NCBI GenBank assembly: GCA_965637545.1
Contig: OZ281494.1
Location: 27,776,001-27,840,000 of the forward strand
Reading direction: 5' to 3'
Source of the DNA: Phallusia mammillata
Taxonomy: Eukaryota
Length of the DNA: 64,000 nt
In this document: positions 4,400-63,929 of the stretch, piece after piece
Numbering within the stretch: position 1 is the stretch's first letter
Layout of the letters: each line of letters opens with the position of its first letter
Notes under the pieces: generated by a model
What the model saw: the letters and a program-made list of their open reading frames with translations, nothing else
Database searches by the model: none
Told to the model about the DNA's origin: nothing
Position numbers and translations under genes: made by a program

Positions 4400-17795
<13,396 letters not shown>

Positions 17796-49700: not shown

Positions 49701-52700
49701 ATTTTTTTTTGCTAGATTTAGTTTGTATAAGATAACCGATAGTCTCGATTTTGGCAATAGGTCATTTTTTTATTTGGCAACGCCGCCAGAAACTGTTTTG
49801 GCGATGCACCAATTTAAATTGTCACCGAAAAACAACAAAAACCTGAGCTTTTTAAAAACAAAAACAGAAACTGCCATTTTTTCGTAAACTTTTTTAGGGT
49901 AAGTTTATTCGAATTCATTTCGGAACAAGTGGAAAGCTCTCGGGAGGAGATATTGAGTCTTATCTTCTTGAGAAGAGCAGAGTCATCTTCCAGCTTCCGG
50001 CAGAGAGGAGTTACCATATTTTCTACCAGGTTTGTACTAAAATCGATTTTGAAAGCCGTCTTCTAAATGTTCGATTAGCTAAACAAAAATACTAAAAGCC
50101 ATTACCACAGGCAAACTAGCCATTGTTATTCCTTTTACTAAGTGATTGTTTTACACCATAGTCAAAATTAAACGTTTTTAAGTCTAAAATATAGGTGGGT
50201 TAAACAGTTTAAAATCCAGCCAAATTCGATTTTGCTTCACGTTTTTTTAAATCAACCTGGATGACTTGATTCTTCTATGACCCCTCTCTCTAACTTTTTT
50301 AATAATAAAAAAACCTAAGTCCCTTTCACACACAATGTGACCAGTTTTTCAAGCTTTAAGATTTGAACCAGTTTTTCAAGCTTTATCAAGACATAATAAA
50401 GTGATTGAATAACGAGGAACTGTCGTCATTCAAGAAAGTTACATTCTTTTCGATAGCAAACCATTTTTTGTTGTTGTTTAGATTATGTCTTCTGGCAAGC
50501 CTGACATGATTGAGCAACTCTGCATTACTACCAATCCAAAGGACTACCAGTGGATCAGCCAGGGAGTGCTCACTGTTGACAACATGGACGACAAACAGGA
50601 ATTTGCTTTCACCGATGTAAGCTTACATGTTTTTTGCAGCAATTTTTGTGATTGAGAGTTTAAACGTTATGCAGAAACGAACTAATGCTATAATGAGTGT
50701 TAATGAATGCGAAAAGTAAAACGCAATAATTTCAGCAGGTTAACATACCTAACCGGATATTCCTGTAAGGTTGCCTGAAAAGTTGGATGTATTTTATTTT
50801 ACCTATTTTACTGGAACATTTTTAGATGATTAGAAAACTAATTCCCTTAGCCTAAACCCCTGTTTAGCAAAACTCAGCAAACAACCTTTTTAGGTATATT
50901 TTCACTTTAAAGAAAAACCTAAATTCATTTTTTATTCTCTCCCATTTTTTTACATTTTAACGCGCCATATTCACCTTTTCTTACAATACCACTTCACAAC
51001 AGGAAGCTTTCGATGTTCTCGGATTTACTGAGGACGAAAAGGTGGGATCCTATCGACTCACTTGTGGCGTAATGGTCTTTGGCTCTATGCGTTACAAGCA
51101 GAAACCCAGAGACGAACAAGCAGAGGTTGACAGTGTCGAAAGTAGGTCATACTGACACTTGTCACATGCAAACCGTAATGTCCTTTTCGTGTTTTAAACT
51201 TACCACATGTTTAGTTTTAGCTAAAAGGGTTCAATTTGAGTCCGTTGGAGGTTGTTGCCTGTTTAGCAAAAACCAAAACATGTTAATTTCACATGAGCTT
51301 ACTTTTTATTCCAAACAAAGAGGTTACAACAGAGTATTAAAACGGATAGCCAATTTTGTTCAAAATGCGGTTATTGTTTGATTATTCCCATTTTGTTAAG
51401 TTCAAAGTGTTTAATATCTTTTTTATGTGTGTCGAGTTTGCTGACAACTTTTTCAAATCTTCACTTGTCTTTCAAAACTTGCAGTTGCTGACAAATGCTC
51501 GTACTTGTTCGGAATCAACTCGAACGAATTGTGCAAAGCGATTACGCGTCCCAGAGTAAAAGTCGGAACGGAATATGTGCAGAAGGGTCAGAACGTCGAC
51601 CAGGTACGCTATTACGTCACGGCTACGTTTACCGCCATGTCATATCTACACAATTACGTCACAGACACTCGTCTACATTACATAAAAAGTACAACATTAC
51701 AAAACGTTTCATACCAAAATACAAGATATTAGAAGTGGTAAAATTAGCAATTGCGTCATTATAATGACGTCATTCTTGTGTGTTTCAGTGCAAAAACTCG
51801 ACAGGTGCTCTGGGCAAAGCTGTGTACAACAACTTGTTCCGTTGGATTGTCTTCCGTCTTAACATCACACTGGACACTAAATTGCCCAGAAACTATTACG
51901 TTGGTGTGCTAGATATTGCCGGCTTCGAGATTTTTGAGGTAATAGGCTGTTCAAAAATCTTTTAATTAATAACTTGATTATAACCAATCCGTTTGCGTTC
52001 TTTCATATCACCGCTTAATTGCTTTTATCTTCAAGTTTGCTTCGCCCCTTTCTTTACTGTTGTGCTGCACCAAGTTACATCCCTTCTGTTGGTTTTTATT
52101 TAACATGACGATCACAATACGAACTGTCTAACTCTAAACGTTGTGATGTTTTTCACTCAAACACTGGCTTGTGTCGTTTCGTCAGTTTTTGCCTTTTCCA
52201 CACCATTTTTGGGATAAGTACAATTTGAAACCGGAAAAAATCGAAACGATAGCATCAATTTTATTTCAAATTGACTTGTTTCTCGTTCCAACGTTTTCCG
52301 ATTTGTTTTCTCTAGTTCAACACTTTCGAACAACTCTGCATCAACTTCACCAACGAGAAGCTGCAGCAATTCTTCAACCACCACATGTTCGTCCTTGAAC
52401 AGGAAGAGTACAAGAAGGAAGGAATCCAATGGACTTTCATCGATTTCGGCATGGATCTGCAGGATTGCATTGAGCTTCTCGAAAAGGTAAAGGGATTTTG
52501 TAAACGTGTGATAAAGCCCAAATTTAATGATATTTTCTTGAAACTTTACAACTGTTTTGCTTATTGCGTAATTTAGACTTCCTTCCAATAACGAATATTT
52601 ATATGAAGGTTTAAAATGCAACTGTCTATACTTAGGTAAGCTATCCCGACGTATACTGCTTTCACAGAAAATTATGTCAAAATTATGTATCATCAATAAA

Positions 52701-55700
52701 ATAACTAACAAAAACATTTACACTTTCGACTATACTTGTTGCGCATGTATGCATTACAACTCTATATCTCGATTTGCAGATCTTGTAAATTTTACTCATA
52801 CAAAAAAAATTACTTTCACATTAACTTCTACCAATTTACTTATCACCCTCTTCATTGTATATCGGATTAAAAACAGTCTTACTGATCTCAACATCTCTCG
52901 TTCTTTCAGCCAATGGGAATCTTCTCCATCCTGGAAGAGGAATCGATCGTTCCCAAGGCAACCGATGAGACCTTTAAGAACAAACTCTACGAACAACACG
53001 ACAAGAAGTCCAAGGCGTTCGTGAAACCCAAAGTTTCTGGCAAGAAATCTGGCAACGCCCATTTCTCGGTTCGACATTACGCTGGAATCGTAAGTATCAC
53101 CAAACATAAACGTAAACACACTCGATTTAAACCAGTTATGCTAACCTAAGGTAAAGCCTTCCCACTATTTTTTTACACCATGTCCGAGAAATAAACAAAC
53201 ATTAATCTTCACAGCGTTCAGAATAATATAGACTACAACATGAAAACTATTTTTCTCTTTTTCAATTAATAGCGAATCTTAAAAAGTATTTTGCTAGCTT
53301 GGCGCATCATTCTTACAATATGACGTCACTTCTATATGACGTAGGTGGACTACAACGTCGACGGATGGTTGAACAAGAACAAGGATCCGTTGAACGAGAG
53401 CGTTTTAAGTTTGTTCAGGAAATCTTCAAACAAACTGATGTCGGGTCTCTTCCCTGAGGTTAAGGAAGAGGGTGAGTTTTTCAGCAACTTTGCTGTGTAT
53501 ATGGTATTAGATTTCAACACAAATAGTCTAAATTTAAAGATACTTTCATAATTAATTGGGCCACATCAGTTCTCGAAACGTGGATTTAGTATCCAAAAGA
53601 AATCAGTTTCTTCATAAAAGTTTCTTTGGGCTAAAACGATTATTGTTTAAACCACGAATCCATTCCGATTTTCATAGTTAAAATGTAAAACAAAATTTCC
53701 GCAAAAGCCTATCACACTGCAAAAGCCTATTTATGTACAAAGTAAACGTAGGCTAGTACTTCGCAATATAGTTAACATTATTCTTTGCCAATCAATGATC
53801 GACATTGTGTCACGTGAACGTCTCCTAGCAACCGCGTGCTTCCATCCCACAGCGACAACTGTGAATTAATTTACTCGAGCATTGCAGCTGCCACATCCAC
53901 GCCCGCGAGGCCACACTCCATATATGGATGGTAGTTACATGCCGCCGGCTTGTGGTTGTGGCGTCATAAAGATGATTTGTTGATGTCATAAGCTGTCTTA
54001 CAATGCACAATTCTAATTTTAGTCGTAACGTTATATTTTTAAAGTAAATAGATTATGTATTCTTTATGTAACTCAAGTGTTTAAAAACGGGTGTAACCGA
54101 TGTGTCCCCGCATATCACTGATGATGGCATGAGGTATTGCTGAAACGTTTGAATCAGAGTTGTAAGTCAGGCCGGGCTTTTCGGACCGGGTTCGGGCTAA
54201 GGTTTCTCAAAAACGGGCTTGATTCGGGCCTGACTTTACACTTTGTGTCAATAATTTTTTGAATAAATTTAACTAGCTAAGTTGCCAGTTACTGGACCTG
54301 ACCTAATGTCAAACAGCCCTAAAACGCCTTCTGGCCAATTATCTATTATGTTTGTTGGGTTGGTCTTTCCTGAGTATCGGGCTCGGGCCGGGTTCGGGCT
54401 TTAATTTCAGGCCTGTTTGCAACTCTTGTTTGAATACTAATAAGCATATCGCTTTTTACTTCTATTTTAACGGTTATTTTCCCCGATAAACTAATGAACA
54501 GATCCGTGGATAGTGCTCTAAAGGTTGTATATTTTTAATACAGCTTGAAACTTATGTTCAGCCAGTTTTCAATTAATTCTATTGTCCAGTGTGCAACAAG
54601 CCTCAAAATCTAGTTTGAATCAACACCCATAAGGTTACAATGGCAAGTTAAAAACAACTCTGTGTCTCCCTCAGGTGGCGGCAAAAAGAAGAAGAAGGGA
54701 GGAAGCTTCCAAACTGTTTCAGCTCTTTACAGGGTAACTTTTACGCTGTTTGTGATAAAATTTGCTAATAAAAGCCTTGGAGGATTTTTTTATCCCATGT
54801 AAACGGCGTGATTTCGAAAACTAATACAAACAATATATTGAAAGTTTTGTAGTAATCATAGGCTAGTTTAACCTCGATGCTAAACTATTCACCGGCAATA
54901 AAAAAATTAAGTCTGGCATTGTCTCTAAAAACTCGCTTTCAAGGGATGTTTTGTAATGTGTGATAATATAACTTTAAACCCAATGAATTTCTTATATGGA
55001 CCACTGGTGAAATCACAATAATGCTTTTTCTCAAGGAACAACTTAACAAGCTGATGACGAACCTTCGCAACACGAAACCTCACTTCGTGCGTTGCATTAT
55101 TCCCAACGAGATGAAGCAGCCGGGAATTATGGACGCACGTAAGTAACGAATTTTCCCCAAAGATGTCTCGTATGCCACTAGGTCGAATTGGTGCCGATTT
55201 TGGTTTCCTATATATTTCGGCCGATTGATTAATTTGCAGTGCTCAGATGAGGTCATACTACGCTGACGTCACTATTACGTCATTTATACTACTCGACAAA
55301 CATTTTTTTTGCTGGTAGACGATGATTTACCTAAAATCCATGCAGTTGTGAATACCTTTGATGCTGCAACGTGCGATACATTTTGTAGATTAAAACAGTT
55401 TTAATGCTTAAACCTAAGATCTTGTGTTTCTCTGACAGTATACCCTTTACTTTGCAGACTTGGTGTTGGCTCAGCTCAAGTGCAACGGCGTGCTTGAAGG
55501 AATTCGTATTTGCCGCAAGGGATTCCCCAACAGGCTTCCATACCCTGAATTCAAACAGAGGTTGGCTATAATCTTTGTATTAATTGGAGTTATAAACAAA
55601 CCATTCTATTTTGTATCATAACATTCGACCTTTATTCTTGTGTTGCGAAAATTCATTGGTATGCTTTGCGTAATCCGGCCTTTGTTCGTGACGTAGATAC

Positions 55701-58700
55701 CAGGTCCTTGCCGCAAAGTTGGTTGCAAACATGGTGGACAGCAAGAAAGCTACAGAGACGGTTGTGTCCCATGTAGAACTGGATACTGCTTTGTACAAAA
55801 TCGGACACACCAAGGTACGATGACTAAATGTTCATACATAGTTCAGGTAAAATGACAAAATGATTGTAAATGTATTGGTACAGCGACCATTATCAGTAAA
55901 TGCCAGGAATTGTGATCACTTTCCACTCAAATTAAGTCAAACTATTTATTGGCAGATCTTCTTCAAAGCCGGAGTTCTCGCCGATCTTGAAGACAAGCGT
56001 GACGAAATCCTCTCCATCATCGTCACAAAGATGCAGTCACGTGTTAGAGGAAAACTGATGAGGATCGAATTCAAGAAGATGCTGGAGCGACAGTGAGTGA
56101 TATTTGTTTTTCGCTCGTCATATATGTTACCTAACTGACACCTTTGTTGCGTTATAGACGTGCAGCGCGAGCCATCCAACGCAACATCCGTAAGTTCTTG
56201 CAGTTCCGCGACTGGCAGTGGTGGAAACTCTACACCAAGGTACGTCACATTTAAACCCAGTGGAATGTTGGCAATTATGTGACTTCACAAAAGTAATGAC
56301 ACCATAATTGTCAGTTTATATGAATATCTTGATTCGTAGTGTTTCAAATCAGTGGTTCTTAACATTTTTAGTGTAGTTTCCTACTAAAGTCAACCACTAA
56401 TGTCAAATTTCTCCCTTTGTTATTTCCATGATGATGTTTTTTGCCGTACACTGTAACAAATTGTCCCTATTTGACTGAAAATAGTTACTTTGTAACTAAA
56501 TGATTAAATTTGTGACTTAAGATATTCAAAAAATAAAACTTTACACAACAATTTGATACCATTGACTTAAGCAATTTTCCTCTACATGTACATTTCCCAC
56601 CAGTTAAGAATCACTGTTTTAAACTGTGTTCATTTGGGGTTCATTTAATTTCGTTTTAGATACGTTGTGCTTTATTTATTTTTTCTCAGTTTGTCAGATC
56701 TTGATCTGAATTTTGACTTATTAATATTATGACGTCACCAGGTGAAGCCCCTACTCAACGTGGTCCGTGTTGAGGACGAGTTGAAGGCGAAGGACGATGA
56801 GATTGCGGACTTGAAGGATAAGTACGGTAAAGAGGAAAAACTGCGCAAGGAATACGAGGAAAAATGCGTCCATCTCTTGTCAGAGAAGAACGATCTTACT
56901 TTGCAACTCCAAGCGGTAAGTCTAATACTTTGTTAAAGCGACACATGTTTTATTTGTGTAGCAAAAAAACGTTGAGGAAAATCATACAAAGTCAGTAATT
57001 ACAGCAAGAGCTTTTCTACTGGGCTCGAAAATTGTGCTTTATTTTATTTTTTTCAAATGAAGGCAATTCGTAAGGAGATGAGCTTAAAGACATTTTGACA
57101 ATAACTAGACCAGGGATGGCGAACACGAAGTGACCCGCCACGTGAATTTTAGTGACCCACTTGTAGTTTTTTTTACAATTTAGACTGATTACTATAGGTA
57201 GGGTTACCAGACTTTCAAGATTAAAAAGCAACGCAACAGTTAAATTTAAGCCCCTTGCCAGATTGCCTATTGTCTTAAAATACAGCTTGTTGAGTCACTT
57301 GTGAGGCAAAAGATGTTTATTTAAACGTACAACTTGAAACGATTTGTTGTAACTTTGTTAACGCTGTTCGGTTCAACATATTCATGCGAATCCTTGTTTT
57401 TACACATGAATTTGGTAAAATGAAGTGCCAGGAATCGTCTTAGCTCAGATATGACTGCTGCTTGTATTAAGATGAAACTGTCTAGGATTGCAAGGCTTGC
57501 AGACAAGATGCTTAAGCTTCTCATTGACATTCACATGTTATAAAAAATGTGACCCACTTTGTTTTCTTTTTGAATTATGATCTCATGTATAACCCATTCA
57601 ACTAAAAAGGTTCGCCATCCCTGAACTAGACTATCTTAAAATCTCATTGTTGATCCATTCCGTCTTTATAGGGTAATCGGTTTCTTTGTGCAAAAAATAA
57701 TATTGTATTTGGTAGCTAGAGCAGAGAAGTACAAGATTACGGAAAAGGCGATATCTTGTCTCTTCTTGCCTATAGTACAGTAAAAAGCGATTTTGTTATC
57801 ATCACCATTGACTACCACAACAACCAAAAAACAACGACGAACACATACAGTAAAACCAGTTCAAGGTGAAAAACTTCATCACAATAAGCCATATCATACC
57901 CAATTGTGATTAATTATCAGAACTCGGGAAAGTTTGTTTAAACTTTGATAACCTTTGTCTCCTTTCCTAGAACTTGATTGACACGTCGCGTCTGACACAA
58001 TACCTACTTATTAACGTCATATGGGGTTTCGACGTCGATTTGTTTAAGATTGCAAAAAATTAAAATAATACGTTCAAATTTAAGGTAAATTTCACTTGTG
58101 ATGTGTAACGCGGGTTAGGCATTTTTACGCAAGAGTTGTTTCTCGCACTCGAGTATTTATTTAACCCAGCTATAAAATTTCGCTATTTTGAGTTTACAAC
58201 TTCAATTTTCGGCCGCTCCCTCCGTTTCACACAACTGCTACACTTCCAATAAAACATGTCAAGCGACAACAAAATAGTGCTATGTAAATCCACACCAGAC
58301 CTCGACCAAAGCCCGTACATAAGAGTGTAAATATGTCAACGATCGACGTATGACATGAGTCCAACGTTAAATCCAAGTTACGTCTAGTTTAAAACGAAAA
58401 AGGGTTCTATGGAGGTAGTTTGGTAATGGATTGATTAAAATGCTATGGGGCCTTTCGTGCTTGATTTAAAGGCGATTCCTTTAGCGTGTCTAGCATCGGT
58501 AATATGACAGTTATCTTTTTCACATGTAACAAACAACCAATACTACTCATTGTCAGGAGAGAACGATTCAACCCTTTTCGTTTTCGTGTCCTTTAAACGA
58601 TGATTGTTAGCTTTCGGAAGGTAGAGATAGTTTGAGTTACTTCTTCAAACAATTCGCCTTTTGTTTTAATTCACCGATAAGCTATCTAGCTTTTGCCTAT

Positions 58701-61700
58701 CGTGTGTTGTACTAAATGGGAGAAAAGTTAACCTTTTTAGTGGCAATTTCGAGTTTTTGGAACGTAGTTAACAAAGCTATGGAGAACTACGACTCTAAGA
58801 CATCTTAACAACGTCCCATTTGATCTACAACAACGTACAAACAAGAACAAATAACAAAAAACAGAGTTCAAATATTAACATTTAGTCGCAAAGCCAAATC
58901 AAACAAAGAAAACATTTCGTACTTAAACATCCCTACACAACGTTAAGATGCTGAACAACGCAAACTCCGAAGCCACCAGATAAAAGGATTTATCCCGATG
59001 TAAACGCGACAATATTTTCACCTGTCAAACTCGTAAACCTTACACTGTTTGTCTTTTCCGCTCGAGGGGCCTTTGTGACTGTGTGTGTTCAACATAGTTG
59101 AGCTAATATTTAAGAAGTTCAATAATTGTTTGAGTGTTCGAAAGCTCGGTGCAGCTCTCACACACAGAAAGGCACTCATTCATAGGGATGGGCTTTTGTA
59201 GTTTTAGTGTTATTTGTCTTCACAGTATTACTTTTCCGGTTTCAAATACTCGTTTGTAATAAGGCAGTGCTTAGCGGAAGCTTTATTAACATCACACCTG
59301 TCAATGTATGTGGTATAGCAGGAGAGTATGAGTTAGTCATTTAATGCTTATTAGTTTAACAATCTTTACTAGTCGGTTACCTTTAAAGTTTAGTGTCCTA
59401 AAGCCAATTTTTGTCTGCTTCCACCCTTTCAAGCTTTAAATATTCTAACAGCGTAACTGTTGAAGGAGAAACATTTTGCTGTTAAAGATTTTGTGCCGTC
59501 GCAATGTCTGATGACGCTCACAGACTATCAGTTCGGCGTCGCACAAGGAATCGAAGTATTATAAATCCCAAAGACGTTGAAGAAAGCAAATCGTATGAAG
59601 TCACAAATTCTTTACAAGAGGTCACAAGAAGTGTTCATGACGTCATTACAGTGACGCAGTCAAGCGAAGTTGAAGTAACAACTGTACGGAGAAGTCGAGC
59701 GTCACGTGACCTAAAGAGATTGTCTGTAAACACCGGAAGTACGTCATCTCCAGCAAACAGTACACGTCACAGCAATGACGTCGATTCCAGTTACTCTCCC
59801 AGGCATTCCGAAAATATGGAACAACACTTGGACAGTCCGCGTTCTCACGAAGCAAATGATGACGTAGGCGTGACGCGGCGTTGCTCGTTGATGAATAGTC
59901 AGCGAAGCGGAAAGTTAATGGAGTTACGTAATCGTTACACAAGCGATGAGGTAGACAGTATGACGTTTGAAGACGAGGAGGTTGAATTAAAAAGCGAGCG
60001 ATCCCAACAGAGTGATGCCACTGATGAGCAGTATGACGTCACAACGAACGGTGCGCACGAGAGTGTGACGTCATGGCTTATGAACGACTGTAGTTCATCT
60101 GCTAGCGAGGATAGCGATAGTTCAAGTGATTCGGAAAGCGGCCGCGGGGAAACGAAAGCGCCAAGTCGGCAGATTTCAGCTGAAAATCTCAATGAGTTAG
60201 TTAATGGATGCGAACAAAGTGCTGAAGAAGTGAATGAACCGTTGGTAGAACAAGAACATGTAAATGAATCAATCAATTCCAGATTGCCACCGATGGAACA
60301 ATACCGATTGTGTTTTGAGGTTCGTCTGGGCAATAAATGTAACCAAACACACATAGTTACACAAGCACACGTGATGTACAACGCACAATAAAAATGCGAA
60401 CAAATATCTACTTCACATTTTGGTCTGATGAAGCAGGGAATTGGGCATTTTGAAAACACCTTTTTGTGATGTGTATTTTAAAGGGGTCAGTTGTGTGGCT
60501 GTGAAGTTGATCTTCTGTTGGTATGCCGTAGTTGTATGTACACAATATCAGAAGGGCATTTTAGCCTATGTACGTGTGTAAACATTATCAATAATTTTAC
60601 GTTGTAAACGGGACGGATAGGAACTATTTCGTAATGGTTTTAAACAAAATCTCTTTGTTTGGAAAGCACCACGCAAGATCATGAATTGGTGCGAGTAACT
60701 ATTACCAGCATTTCTGTTCAACAGAAAGTTTTATTGTCCAGGGGAAAATGAAACACATGTAGTAATTATGTAATATTATTTACAGGAGCAAGACAACTTG
60801 GCCGATGCTGAAGAGAGAAACGAGCAACTGGTTAAGAACAAGCAAGATCTTGAGAACCAGGTACAACCTAATACATTTAGAATGTTCACTAGACGGGCTT
60901 GCATCTAACAAATTGTTAACAACAAAATCAGACCTAATGTTTTCGATGACGTATTGGTTACGTGATTCTTACGTCGGAGTTTGTAATTTGGGCCGGATAC
61001 TATGGCTCGGGTTTGAGTTTGACTTTGAAATTGGTTTGATTAGCGCCTGACTTTACACTGGGCATCATTTGTGCTTCAATTGTATCATCTTTCGGGCCTA
61101 ATTCAGGATTCATTTTGACATTAAATCGGGTTTGGGTCGGGTTTTCGGCTAGTTCTTTCGGGTTTAGGTCTCAATTTCGGGCCCGCTTACAACTCTAACT
61201 GACGTAACATGCAAGCAAAGTTTAATGCTTCTTTAATCTGGCTGTAAAAATATCTAAAACTTACATCATTTAATACAGTTATGCTTGATAGCAGGAAATT
61301 TGATGACGTCACTAACGTTTACTGTGACGTAACAGGTGGCTGATCTCTCGGAGCGCTTGGAGGAAGAGGAGGCAAACAACGAACAGCTGTCAGCAGCCAA
61401 GAAGAAGTTGGATCGCCAGGTTGAAGATCTCACTCATGATATTGAGGAAGCAGAGAGCAACATCAACAGGCTCGACAAAGACAAGCAGGTTTGTGACCAG
61501 CGAGATTGTTTTGAAAACCGGGCTAGTTTTTTTAATGTATTACTTACTTAGGATTTGTGGAAAAATGAAAATTTCGCCACGCGCGTTTGTTTGAAAAGTT
61601 GGGTAAAATAATTTAGAATAAGTTAGCGACAATTACGACAAATTTTAACAACATCTTAAATGCTTTACAATCAAACAATGCGCTTTTTGTATGTTTTGGA

Positions 61701-63493
61701 TTTATAAGTAAAATCATAACTTATTGACATTTATTTTTAAATTAATGTCCCTAATCTAAAACAAGAAGTATTTACACATCTGATAGTTGAGTATTACATT
61801 TCAATCCGGTTAGTTTCATACCGGTTAAGCGCATATATTGAAACCGTAGCTTCTCACTGAAAATGTATCATTGGTCCAATCCGATAAATTGGAAAAAAGC
61901 TTGTCAAATTGCTGATGCAATTATCTAGATTATTTTGTATTGTATCTCTTATTAAACACCAACTACGCAAGAGATTGGCCGTTTTTCATTCACCAGACAT
62001 TGGTTTCCACTTTATCCATCGAAAATACATCCACAATTCCACTTTAAACATTTGTTTTTTAGAATCTTGAACTGAAACTTCGTGGTCTCTCAGTTGACCT
62101 GGAGCAGCGCGAGGAAAGTATTAGCAGATTGAACAAGGAGAAGAAACAGCTGGATCAAGTCAACCAGCAAACCTTGGAGGATCTGCAGGCCATGGAGGAC
62201 AAGGCGAACCACCTGAGCAAGCTGAAGACCAAGTTGGAACAACAAGTCGAAGATGTAAGTGACAGAAAAACACTCTGCAAATTTATCCATTTTTTGCCTT
62301 AAAGACTACACAGGGGTGCTCTATACTGTGTGTTTGATAGTAATTTAATCAAAATCACAGTAAATGATGTTTAGAACCAGAGTTTAAGTAATTTTAGGTG
62401 TAATGATATAAAAGCAAAAATGTCAATGTAGGATTAAATGTGTTAAAAAAATTGGCGTCAATTTGATAACATTTTTAAAACTTGTCAGGGGGTAAACTAG
62501 AAAAAAGGTTGAGATCCTCTAGTTCAGAACAATGCACTTTTGTGAGATTCAGAAAATGTTAGTTTTTTGTGTTTAATTTGGCCTTTACTTCGACAATCCT
62601 TTTCGCTCAAGTAAACCTATATTTTATGGCCCAACCCATTCACTTAGGTCGAGGATAGCTTGGAACAGGAACGCAAACACAAGAACGACCTGGAGAAGTC
62701 CAAGAGGAAGTTGGAGGCCGATCTGCGCAACGCCAACGATACCATCACCGATCTTGAGAAGGACAAATCGTCACTGGAGGACGCTCTTCGCAAGTACGTT
62801 CATTGATTTTCCCTTCTTGACAATTATTTACTCATTTGCTCATTTGGGTCAACCTTTAAGCATAAAAACGTATTTGGGTTATGGCCCAATTATTTCGAAA
62901 TGCTATGTTTTTTTTAATTAATTCAAATTTTGTGACTACAGGAAGGACTTCGAGATCAACCAGTTGAATGGACGCGTTGAAGATGAACAAACCCAATGTG
63001 TTCAACTCACCAGAAAACTTAAAGAACTCCAGGTACACTTGTGAGGAACAAACTCGATTAAACTCATGCATTGCCCCTGAGTCAATTTCTTGCTTTGCAA
63101 TAGTTCAAGCATAAAAATATCATTTTAAGTTGACCGTTGTTTGAAGTTAGGTCAACTTTTTTTTCAACAACCCTTAAATTTGCTTAAACCGAATTGGACC
63201 GGATTATTGTTTTACCCCAAACAAAGTAGATATTTTTTACAGACAAATTGAGTTTTTTTTGGAGGAGATAAAGTGGTATTGCCTCTATACCTGTCTTCCC
63301 GGCCAAGTGTTACATTTTAGACCTATCTAAATCTTAACTTTTTGCATAGGCTCGCATCGAGGATTCCGAGAACGAGCTGGAGATGGAGAGAATGGCAAGA
63401 AGCAAGGTCGAAAAGAACAGGAACGAACTTGTCCGTGAACTTGATCACCTTGGCGAGCAACTTGAAGAGGCTGGTGGTGCAACTGTTGCACAG
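46769..63493 (+). CDS. MYH16: Class II muscle myosin heavy chain, MYH16-like (5' 1161 codons; continues past the window end)
   Basis: Exons 46769-46805, 47356-47546, 48004-48147, 48587-48771, 49213-49408, 49898-50029, 50482-50616, 51003-51141, 51485-51603, 51789-51938, 52316-52486, 52910-53089, 53345-53471, 54675-54733, 55036-55138, 55458-55560, 55697-55814, 55956-56092, 56158-56239, 56742-56915, 60786-60860, 61336-61488, 62063-62254, 62648-62793, 62942-63032, 63350-63493 give one continuous frame. Motifs: [42 protein letters not shown], then coiled coil. MYH16-like features (from memory): [45 protein letters not shown]. Orthology is an inference. Confidence 0.95.
47157..47209 (+). ncRNA. Hammerhead-like core, probably degenerate, in the myosin GC-AG intron
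   Basis: CTGATGA-GACC-TTATA-GGTC-GAAAC gives a perfect core and stem II. No clean NUH triplet plus stem I downstream. Confidence 0.5.
48850..49075 (+). mobile_element. Degenerate copy of the CAGAGTTGTAAG hAT MITE family
   Basis: Aligns by eye to 54155-54427 and 60975-61197 (GGGTTCGGG..GATTCGGGCCTGA..TACAC; CATTTGTGCTT). Confidence 0.6.
49491..49657 (+). mobile_element. tRNA-derived SINE (copy 2) in a myosin intron
   Basis: A-box-like TAACTTAGTTGG, stem GAGTC/GACTC, intact B-box GGGTTCGAATCCC. Same 3' body as 26165-26311. Confidence 0.75.
54155..54427. mobile_element. hAT MITE (CAGAGTTGTAAG family)
   Basis: Ends CAGAGTTGTAAG..CAGGCC / GGCCTG..TTGCAACTCT. Perfect TSD GTTTGAAT at 54147-54154 and 54428-54435. 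Confidence 0.85.
56350..56616. mobile_element. hAT (Charlie-like) MITE
   Basis: TIRs CAGTGGTTCTTAAC / GTTAAGAATCACTG. TSD TTTCAAAT / TTTTAAAC (6/8). Confidence 0.78.
57111..57623. mobile_element. hAT MITE in the large myosin intron
   Basis: TIRs CAGGGATGGCGAAC / GTTCGCCATCCCTG. Perfect TSD AACTAGAC. Confidence 0.92.
59504..60319 (+). CDS. Putative alternative first coding exon (272 aa, Ser/Glu/Arg-rich) of a headless myosin rod isoform
   Basis: A 295-codon ORF (59504-60391) inside the 3.9-kb intron 56916-60785. Phase-0 donor GAG|GTTCGT at 60319/60320 fits the phase-0 rod exon at 60786 ([11 protein letters not shown]). In-frame stop at 59483. Acceptor TTCTAACAG at 59450 upstream of the ATG. 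Confidence 0.7.
60975..61197. mobile_element. hAT MITE (CAGAGTTGTAAG family, older copy)
   Basis: Right end CTTACAACTCTA and a degenerate left end. Flanks TCTTACGT / ACTGACGT (6/8). Confidence 0.65.
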
Positions 63494-63929
63494 GTAGCCA
63501 CATTTTCACGACGATATAGGAAATAGTATTTTATGCTTGCTGTCAATCAAAAGTGTCCACGTTTGTAAGCAATTAAGTCCGCAATTGTTTCACTTTCCAC
63601 CCGCAAACTTTACGACGTGAATAACTTGCATGTCAAGGGTGAGTTATTCGAGGTCAGTGTTGTAAGTCCAAGCAAGTTGGGGCCTAAACGGGCTTGATTT
63701 GAGCTTGACCTCTCAACCGGCATCAATTGTGCCGCAATTTCACCAACTTTCGAGCTTAATAGAGGCCTGGTAGAAAAACTCAATAGAATGACATTAAAAA
63801 GTTAACAAGAAGCAATTGAACTTTAATGCAGATAACAACCTTTGCTTATGTAAAACAATGCCAATGCTAAACCGATGGGATTAGAATTATGTCAATTTCC
63901 CTTCAAAAATATTTTCTCCCACGTGCAAC

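Follow-up and report, generated by a model that had tools for sequence, protein, structure and literature searches.

The locus and its intronic open reading frame

We analyzed a 64-kb window of the Phallusia mammillata genome (contig OZ281494.1 of assembly GCA_965637545.1, positions 27,776,001-27,840,000 of the forward strand; coordinates below are window positions), focusing on an open reading frame (ORF) that lies inside an intron of a myosin heavy chain (MHC) gene. The G-alpha, FoxQ1, and MHC genes follow one another in this order at ~13.7-64 kb of the window, and the same gene order was found in Clavelina lepadiformis (L009, OX392442.1), where the compared stretch stops two exons before the intron in question. 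The best matches of the FoxQ1 exon were to Ciona intestinalis (62%), C. savignyi (57%), and Clavelina lepadiformis (57%). The FoxQ1 similarity and the Clavelina synteny together place the window in an ascidian other than Ciona, in agreement with the first-pass annotation of this DNA, which had called the host gene chordate. A motor exon of the host MHC is matched better by vertebrate skeletal MHCs than by scallop myosin.

The first-pass annotation had also described a same-strand ORF of 295 codons in the longest myosin intron of the window, surrounded by otherwise AT-rich DNA, preceded by an in-frame stop codon, and carrying a phase-0 splice donor after codon 272 that is in frame with the next rod exon. 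All of these elements were recovered from the sequence, and the canonical splice that removes the 3870-nt intron was seen in RNA contigs. The ORF occupies 59504-60391 of the plus strand; counted from stop to stop it is open from 59486 and comprises 301 codons, the longest open frame of the window in all six frames. In 2000 Markov simulations with the dinucleotide make-up of the intron, a length of 301 codons was never attained (mean 108, maximum 229); with the richer composition of the ORF itself, it was attained in 3 of 2000. The GC content is 0.45-0.48 in the ORF versus 0.35-0.39 in the remaining intron, and the first codon positions of the ORF are rich in purines. The TAA codon at 59483-59485 excludes use of the ORF as a cassette exon read through from preceding coding sequence.

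No family was found for the ORF in Pfam, in a word-indexed protein search using the ORF alone as query, or in the ESM atlas, where no match exceeded 0.77, and no Rfam family was matched in the host intron. A single DNA contig from read runs X1 and X2 spans 57604-62271 and is flat over the ORF at the depth of its flanks, showing that the ORF is single-copy and not a dispersed repeat. An origin of the ORF from a transposable element or other repeat was rejected on the basis of this depth and of the absence of flanking repeats.

The only repeat in the host intron is an element at 57086-57648 resembling a miniature inverted-repeat transposable element. It is bounded by 39-nt imperfect terminal inverted repeats (...CCAGGGATGGCGAAC / GTTCGCCATCCCTG...) and has a DNA contig depth of 15-120 times that of its flanks; pieces of it are present in RNA contigs, and the reads contain a variant copy without ~204 nt. 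On the minus strand, two open frames overlap the ORF (59938-60477, 180 codons; 59649-60038, 130 codons), as is usual opposite a biased coding sequence.

Conservation of the frame and of its proposed splice donor

A phmmer search against 1.84 billion representative proteins returned two homologues of the ORF product, P0001 and P0002 (E ~1e-11 to 1e-12), with ~38% identity across the matched part. Searching the protein database with the ORF profile gave nothing beyond P0001, and the A3 profile matched at three loci only. These belong to the window species and to two ascidian-like species from marine metagenomes, one represented by contig L001 and the other by L002 and L003, of which L003 is a longer contig identical to L002 and derived from a different metagenome. 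Between the three species, the ORF proteins are ~30-35% identical.

The genomic position of the ORF is the same in the two additional species. In L002/L003, it lies on the same strand inside the MHC gene, between an exon that ends in LTLQLQA/gtgagt (slashes denote exon borders) and the rod exon that begins after ctcag. L003 is collinear with the MHC exons of the window at 51090-63496, with 70-98% amino-acid identity per exon (90% for the exon at 56742-56915) and only ~30% protein identity for the ORF. In L001, the true start is the ATG at 418, the conserved part of the ORF ends in CFE/gtaatt, and the orthologous rod exon follows at 1438, 3' of the ORF as in L002/L003. Comparison of the intron DNA detected two collinear blocks, both inside the ORF, and nothing else that aligns; the last alignable block between the window and L001 stops at 60321, that is, at the GT of the proposed donor. 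The first-pass annotation had proposed to look for the ORF in the corresponding intron of related ascidians, and there it is conserved, with its frame intact in two further species. The orthologous ORF on the same strand of the same intron in these two species is new to this analysis.

Several features demonstrate coding constraint at this place in all three species. The frames remain intact over 259-283 codons despite numerous indels. The frequency of codon differences is 0.61-0.72 at third positions versus ~0.5 at the first and second (position 3 > position 1 >= position 2), and for more than half of the residues identical between species the codons differ. The conserved part starts with an aligned Met that has stop codons upstream of it in each species, and it ends at an invariant CFE followed by GT. 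The conserved motifs are RRR(S/T)RNR, RRCSLM..S.KL.EL.NRY, H..VT..L, and N(S/T)R(V/L)P...Y(R/K)(I/L)CFE (Table 1); the second of them forms one of the two DNA-alignable blocks of the intron. The kinase-type sites listed in the first-pass annotation (RRRT, KRLS, RRCS, and SPR twice) are all present in the translation, and the RRRTRNR motif resembles a site for an AGC kinase or of the nuclear localization signal type. AlphaFold (AF2), run on the three-sequence alignment, gave a mean predicted local distance difference test score of 45, and the domain is thus predicted to be mainly disordered, with conserved kinase-type motifs. Short helices were predicted at residues 136-146 and 183-194, both at conserved blocks, which fits a regulatory head piece composed of short linear motifs.

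The GT that follows the invariant CFE was compared with the donors of the host gene. For this purpose, 19 orthologous donors were mapped in the window and L003, several of them supported by RNA, and a position weight matrix was derived from 37 GT donors. The proposed donor at 60320 scored 7.84, exceeding 24 of these 37 real donors, and its homologues scored 7.92 in L003 (GAG/GTGCGA) and 7.17 in L001 (GAG/GTAATT); the scores in the three species lie at the median of true donors. Among all GT dinucleotides of the ORF (68 in the window, 37 in L003, and 55 in L001), this site ranks first in each species and is always in phase 0. The read-through tails beyond it (23, 15, and 26 codons) are unconserved, have the length expected of random sequence, and are poorer in GC than the exon (0.31-0.40 versus 0.46-0.49). 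The rod acceptor follows the donor at a distance of 466 nt in the window, 283 nt in L003, and 171 nt in L001. The weight of the evidence for this donor comes from the combination of the sharp end of conservation, the rank in three species, and the intron-like tails.

A T at the third intron position, as in the candidate donor, had been reported by the first-pass annotation for two other donors of the gene. Both were found, CAG/GTTTGT at 50029/50030 and GAG/GTTGGC at 55560/55561, the latter being conserved in a second species, and a further one, GTTTGT at 61488/61489, is supported by RNA. Together with GTACAA at 60861, these sites illustrate that MHC donors in the window are degenerate. Unusually degenerate donors were recorded at 50030, 55561, 60861, 61489, and 63494 of the window (GTAGCC being a further example) and at 11692, 12117, and 13313 of L003, including GTCCCC and an apparent GC donor, GAG/GCGAGT.

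The distribution of the exon is restricted. The orthologous intron measures ~2.8 kb in species C and only ~520 nt in a fourth ascidian, species D (L004, L006, and L007). In species D, where the linkage of FoxQ1 and MHC is also conserved, the ORF is absent from the FoxQ1-linked orthologous intron, and a search with the A3 profile near the locus found no copy of the exon. Four other assemblies (L005, L008, L010, and L011) have no myosin within 10 kb of FoxQ1. The absence in species D indicates that the exon is lineage-restricted; it may have arisen in the lineage leading to the three carriers or have disappeared from species D.

Table 1. Positions of the candidate exon, its conserved blocks, and the adjoining features of the host MHC gene
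Feature	Position	Strand	Remarks
Upstream rod exon	56742..56915	+	donor GTAAGT at 56916; RNA joint 56915 to 60786 (GT..AG, skips 3870)
Host intron	56916..60785	+	3870 nt; longest in the part of the MHC gene inside the window
In-frame TAA	59483..59485	+	six codons 5' of the ATG
Candidate alternative first exon, coding part	59504..60319	+	272 codons, Met to CFE
Basic motif RRRTRNR, residues 11-17	59534..59554	+	R12, R13, R15, N16, R17 invariant; RRR(S/T)RNR-like in three species
Block RRCSLM..S.KL.EL.NRY, residues 125-145	59876..59938	+	invariant RRCS, then short predicted helix
Block HESVTSWLM, residues 185-193	60056..60082	+	H185, V188, T189, L192 invariant
Terminal block, residues 258-272	60275..60319	+	best conserved stretch; adjoins donor
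Proposed phase-0 donor GAG/GTTCGT	60320..60325	+	after codon 272 (60319/60320)
Read-through tail	60320..60391, including stop codon	+	23 codons
Proposed intron of the headless transcript	60320..60785	+	466 nt; contains the read-through tail
Rod exon EQ(D/E)NLADAEER, which both forms would share	60786..60860	+	phase-0 acceptor ttatttacag/GAG; RNA joints 56915 to 60786 and 60860 to 61336

A candidate headless transcript and competing explanations

The orthologous position in three species, the conservation that runs from Met to GT, and the top-ranked donor support the reading that 59504-60319 is probably an alternative first coding exon, which would be spliced from 60319 to 60786 to give a headless myosin. 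Under this reading, transcription would start inside the 3.9-kb intron, translation would begin at the ATG at 59504, and the donor at 60319/60320 would be joined in phase 0 to the normal acceptor at 60786, so that the exon at 56742-56915 and all exons upstream of it would be skipped and all downstream rod exons would be used. The junction lies 57 residues past the KPLL proline at the head/rod (S1/S2) border. The product would therefore lack the motor and the neck as well as the first 57 S2 residues. Their place would be taken by a disordered head piece of ~272 residues, with a basic start, an acidic and serine-rich continuation, and conserved kinase-type motifs, followed by ~1000 residues of coiled-coil rod. 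Through this rod, we infer, the headless protein should co-assemble into thick filaments, where the head piece might have a regulatory role.

The headless-myosin proposal of the first-pass annotation thus gained strong comparative support in three species and none from RNA. Read runs X1 and X2 show flat depth across introns and are therefore DNA-like, so they say nothing on transcription. The RNA contigs (X3 and X4) contain the canonical joints 56915 to 60786, 60860 to 61336, and 61488 to 62063. Several results weigh against the first-exon reading. The depth of X3/X4 was zero over 57585-60736, the predicted joint 60319 to 60786 was not seen in these two small runs, and twelve RNA-labelled runs of the species contained essentially none of the sampled words of the ORF. 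This negative evidence is weak because the runs are small, the depth over the MHC itself is only ~2-6, and tissue and stage are unspecified. No database protein joining the ORF domain to the rod was found, although length limits or clustering could hide one. A search of the 417 nt preceding the ATG detected no promoter or leader motif shared between species above chance, and the good acceptor-like sites present in each of the three species at 176-310 nt before the ATG are not distinctive. In addition, the Val codon after CFE would conserve the GT even in an unspliced protein, so that compatibility with phase 0 is not independent of residue conservation. The first-pass annotation had also suggested that an acceptor 53 nt before the ATG could take a leader exon or a spliced-leader (SL) trans-splice. 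The AG exists, but it is outside the five best acceptor-like sites upstream of the ORF, and no support for such a leader was obtained.

The foremost competing explanation is an independent same-strand, single-exon gene nested in the MHC intron, with its own poly(A) site 5' of the rod exon and encoding a disordered, fast-evolving protein of ~275-295 amino acids whose C-terminus would be the read-through tail. It accounts for the intact ORF with its own start and stop in each species, for the listing of the ORF as a stand-alone protein by database gene callers, for the lack of a spliced read in the RNA examined, and for an AATAAA that overlaps the stop codon in the window and an ATTAAA before the acceptor in L001. 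We nevertheless consider a nested gene unlikely, since conservation does not continue to the stop codon and ends exactly at a GT that is the most donor-like site of all three ORFs, leaving tails that vary in length and sequence at intron-like GC. Moreover, the only AATAAA in L002/L003 precedes the read-through stop, and in L001 this stop is only 90 nt from the rod acceptor, which leaves little room for a separate 3' end. A same-strand intronic poly(A) site in a highly expressed gene would also truncate the transcripts of the host, which counts against a nested gene as well.

The exon might instead be coding and otherwise used: it might be joined to another downstream exon, serve as the terminal exon of a different transcript, or be translated only as an upstream ORF that regulates a rod-only mRNA. 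Neither its 5' end nor its 3' partner was observed in RNA, and the upstream acceptor-like sites shared by the three species would also suit such a use. It appears very unlikely to us, given that in every species the rod exon provides the nearest phase-compatible acceptor, a short distance away, that the upstream in-frame stop and the conserved Met favor initiation of translation at the ATG, and that amino-acid conservation across ~270 codons is unlike a purely regulatory upstream ORF. Finally, the ORF could be functionless, having arisen by chance, remained from a transposon, or survived in a decaying pseudogene; this would explain why it has no Pfam family, no named homologue, low language-model recognition, and no detected RNA. 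This last explanation is hardly credible: the frame is the longest in 64 kb and was not matched in any of the 2000 intron simulations, it is single-copy without flanking repeats, and it has stayed intact at orthologous positions in three species between which neutral DNA has reached saturation, which effectively refutes a lack of function.

Motor-less myosins in other animals and further features of the locus

In a survey of metazoan Mhc genes, headless Mhc isoforms are mentioned only in molluscs and insects (PMC3912159). Catchin/myorod is described from molluscan catch muscle (Yamada et al., 2000, as cited in PMC3912159; PMC4410989), and the unique domain of myorod undergoes phosphorylation (PMC4410989). 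For Drosophila myosin rod protein (MRP), the account in PMC3912159 gives an alternative start by which the first exon after the neck is lengthened in the 5' direction (Standiford et al., 1997) and an N-terminus that is short and unconserved even among close relatives. According to the same survey, the point at which catchin joins the rod lies ~260 residues deeper than in MRP. In ascidians, the muscle of the body wall is non-sarcomeric and employs an MYH16-type Mhc3, as documented in a tunicate Myh preprint (10.64898/2025.12.09.693291) and a review of tunicate muscle (PMC6589888), neither of which mentions a headless or rod-only form. Nothing similar was found for chordates.

The ascidian arrangement shares with catchin/myorod its layout, a unique same-strand exon in an intron of a sarcomeric MHC gene 3' of the motor and neck exons, and the conservation of this long separate exon across several species of a clade. 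The unique domain of catchin/myorod is a phosphorylation target, and the ascidian exon likewise carries conserved kinase-type motifs. The two differ in phylum (Mollusca versus Tunicata), in that the ascidian form is predicted from genome sequence, and in the rod junction, which in catchin is ~830 residues from the C-terminus and in the ascidian gene lies elsewhere, nearer to the position in MRP. The candidate form also resembles MRP, a headless sarcomeric Mhc isoform made from an internal start, with nearly the whole rod and a junction near the start of S2; unlike in MRP, a separate exon of ~270 codons with its own donor is conserved here in three divergent species. Homology to the catchin exon was not detected by the phmmer search, which returned only P0001 and P0002, although an MHC chosen to represent its cluster may conceal catchin itself. 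The ascidian case would thus work like catchin/myorod and MRP with no detected homology to either, and is apparently convergent. Internal promoters of muscle genes also produce Drosophila miniparamyosin and, from the MLCK gene, vertebrate telokin/KRP. The principle is similar, in that a start within an intron leads to a product comprising the filament-associated C-terminal portion of a large muscle protein, in some cases preceded by a unique N-terminal exon. The genes involved and their proteins are not those of the ascidian case, and telokin has no long unique domain.

If the first-exon reading is correct, a rod-only partner made from the MHC gene would be a recurrent solution, seen also in the sister group of vertebrates. 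It would furthermore represent a new thick-filament component of the unusual body-wall muscle of ascidians, a multinucleate tissue that looks smooth but contains striated-type proteins. The short conserved motifs RRR(S/T)RNR, RRCSLM, and ...Y(R/K)(I/L)CFE would provide a defined set for testing control by kinases, and the analysis draws attention to an exon that is listed as a separate protein by ORF-based gene callers. A tonic or catch function of the headless form is suggested purely by analogy. Going further, a group of ascidians may have independently evolved a myorod-like motor-less thick-filament protein from a sarcomeric MHC gene, with a conserved, phosphorylatable, disordered head piece that would tune or latch the non-sarcomeric muscle of body wall and siphons; instead of starting at an internal promoter, its mRNA might arise by SL trans-splicing to an acceptor within an intron of full-length MHC pre-mRNA. 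This extended scenario seems to us decidedly unlikely. To our knowledge, a headless myosin produced by SL trans-splicing onto an intronic acceptor is not known elsewhere.

The CpG observed/expected ratio exceeds the window mean of 0.89 both in a stretch of the intron upstream of the ORF (1.3-1.7 at 57800-58600) and in the ORF itself (1.2-1.55), and a TATAAAA is found near 58172. Such values might point to DNA that is unmethylated or has a regulatory role, or to a candidate internal promoter. Of the palindrome TGACGTCA, which is a CRE/ATF-type site, the window contains 14 copies versus 0.78 expected (at most 4 in 100 simulations), at positions 2012, 18586, 33978, 36277, 41813, 46742, 51765, 53321, 55264, 56730, 59638, 60034, 60066, and 61304. 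The copies at 51765, 53321, 56730, and 61304 stand a few to ~25 nt before MHC acceptor sites, three copies lie within the ORF, and the palindrome is also present upstream of the ORF in L001 and L003.

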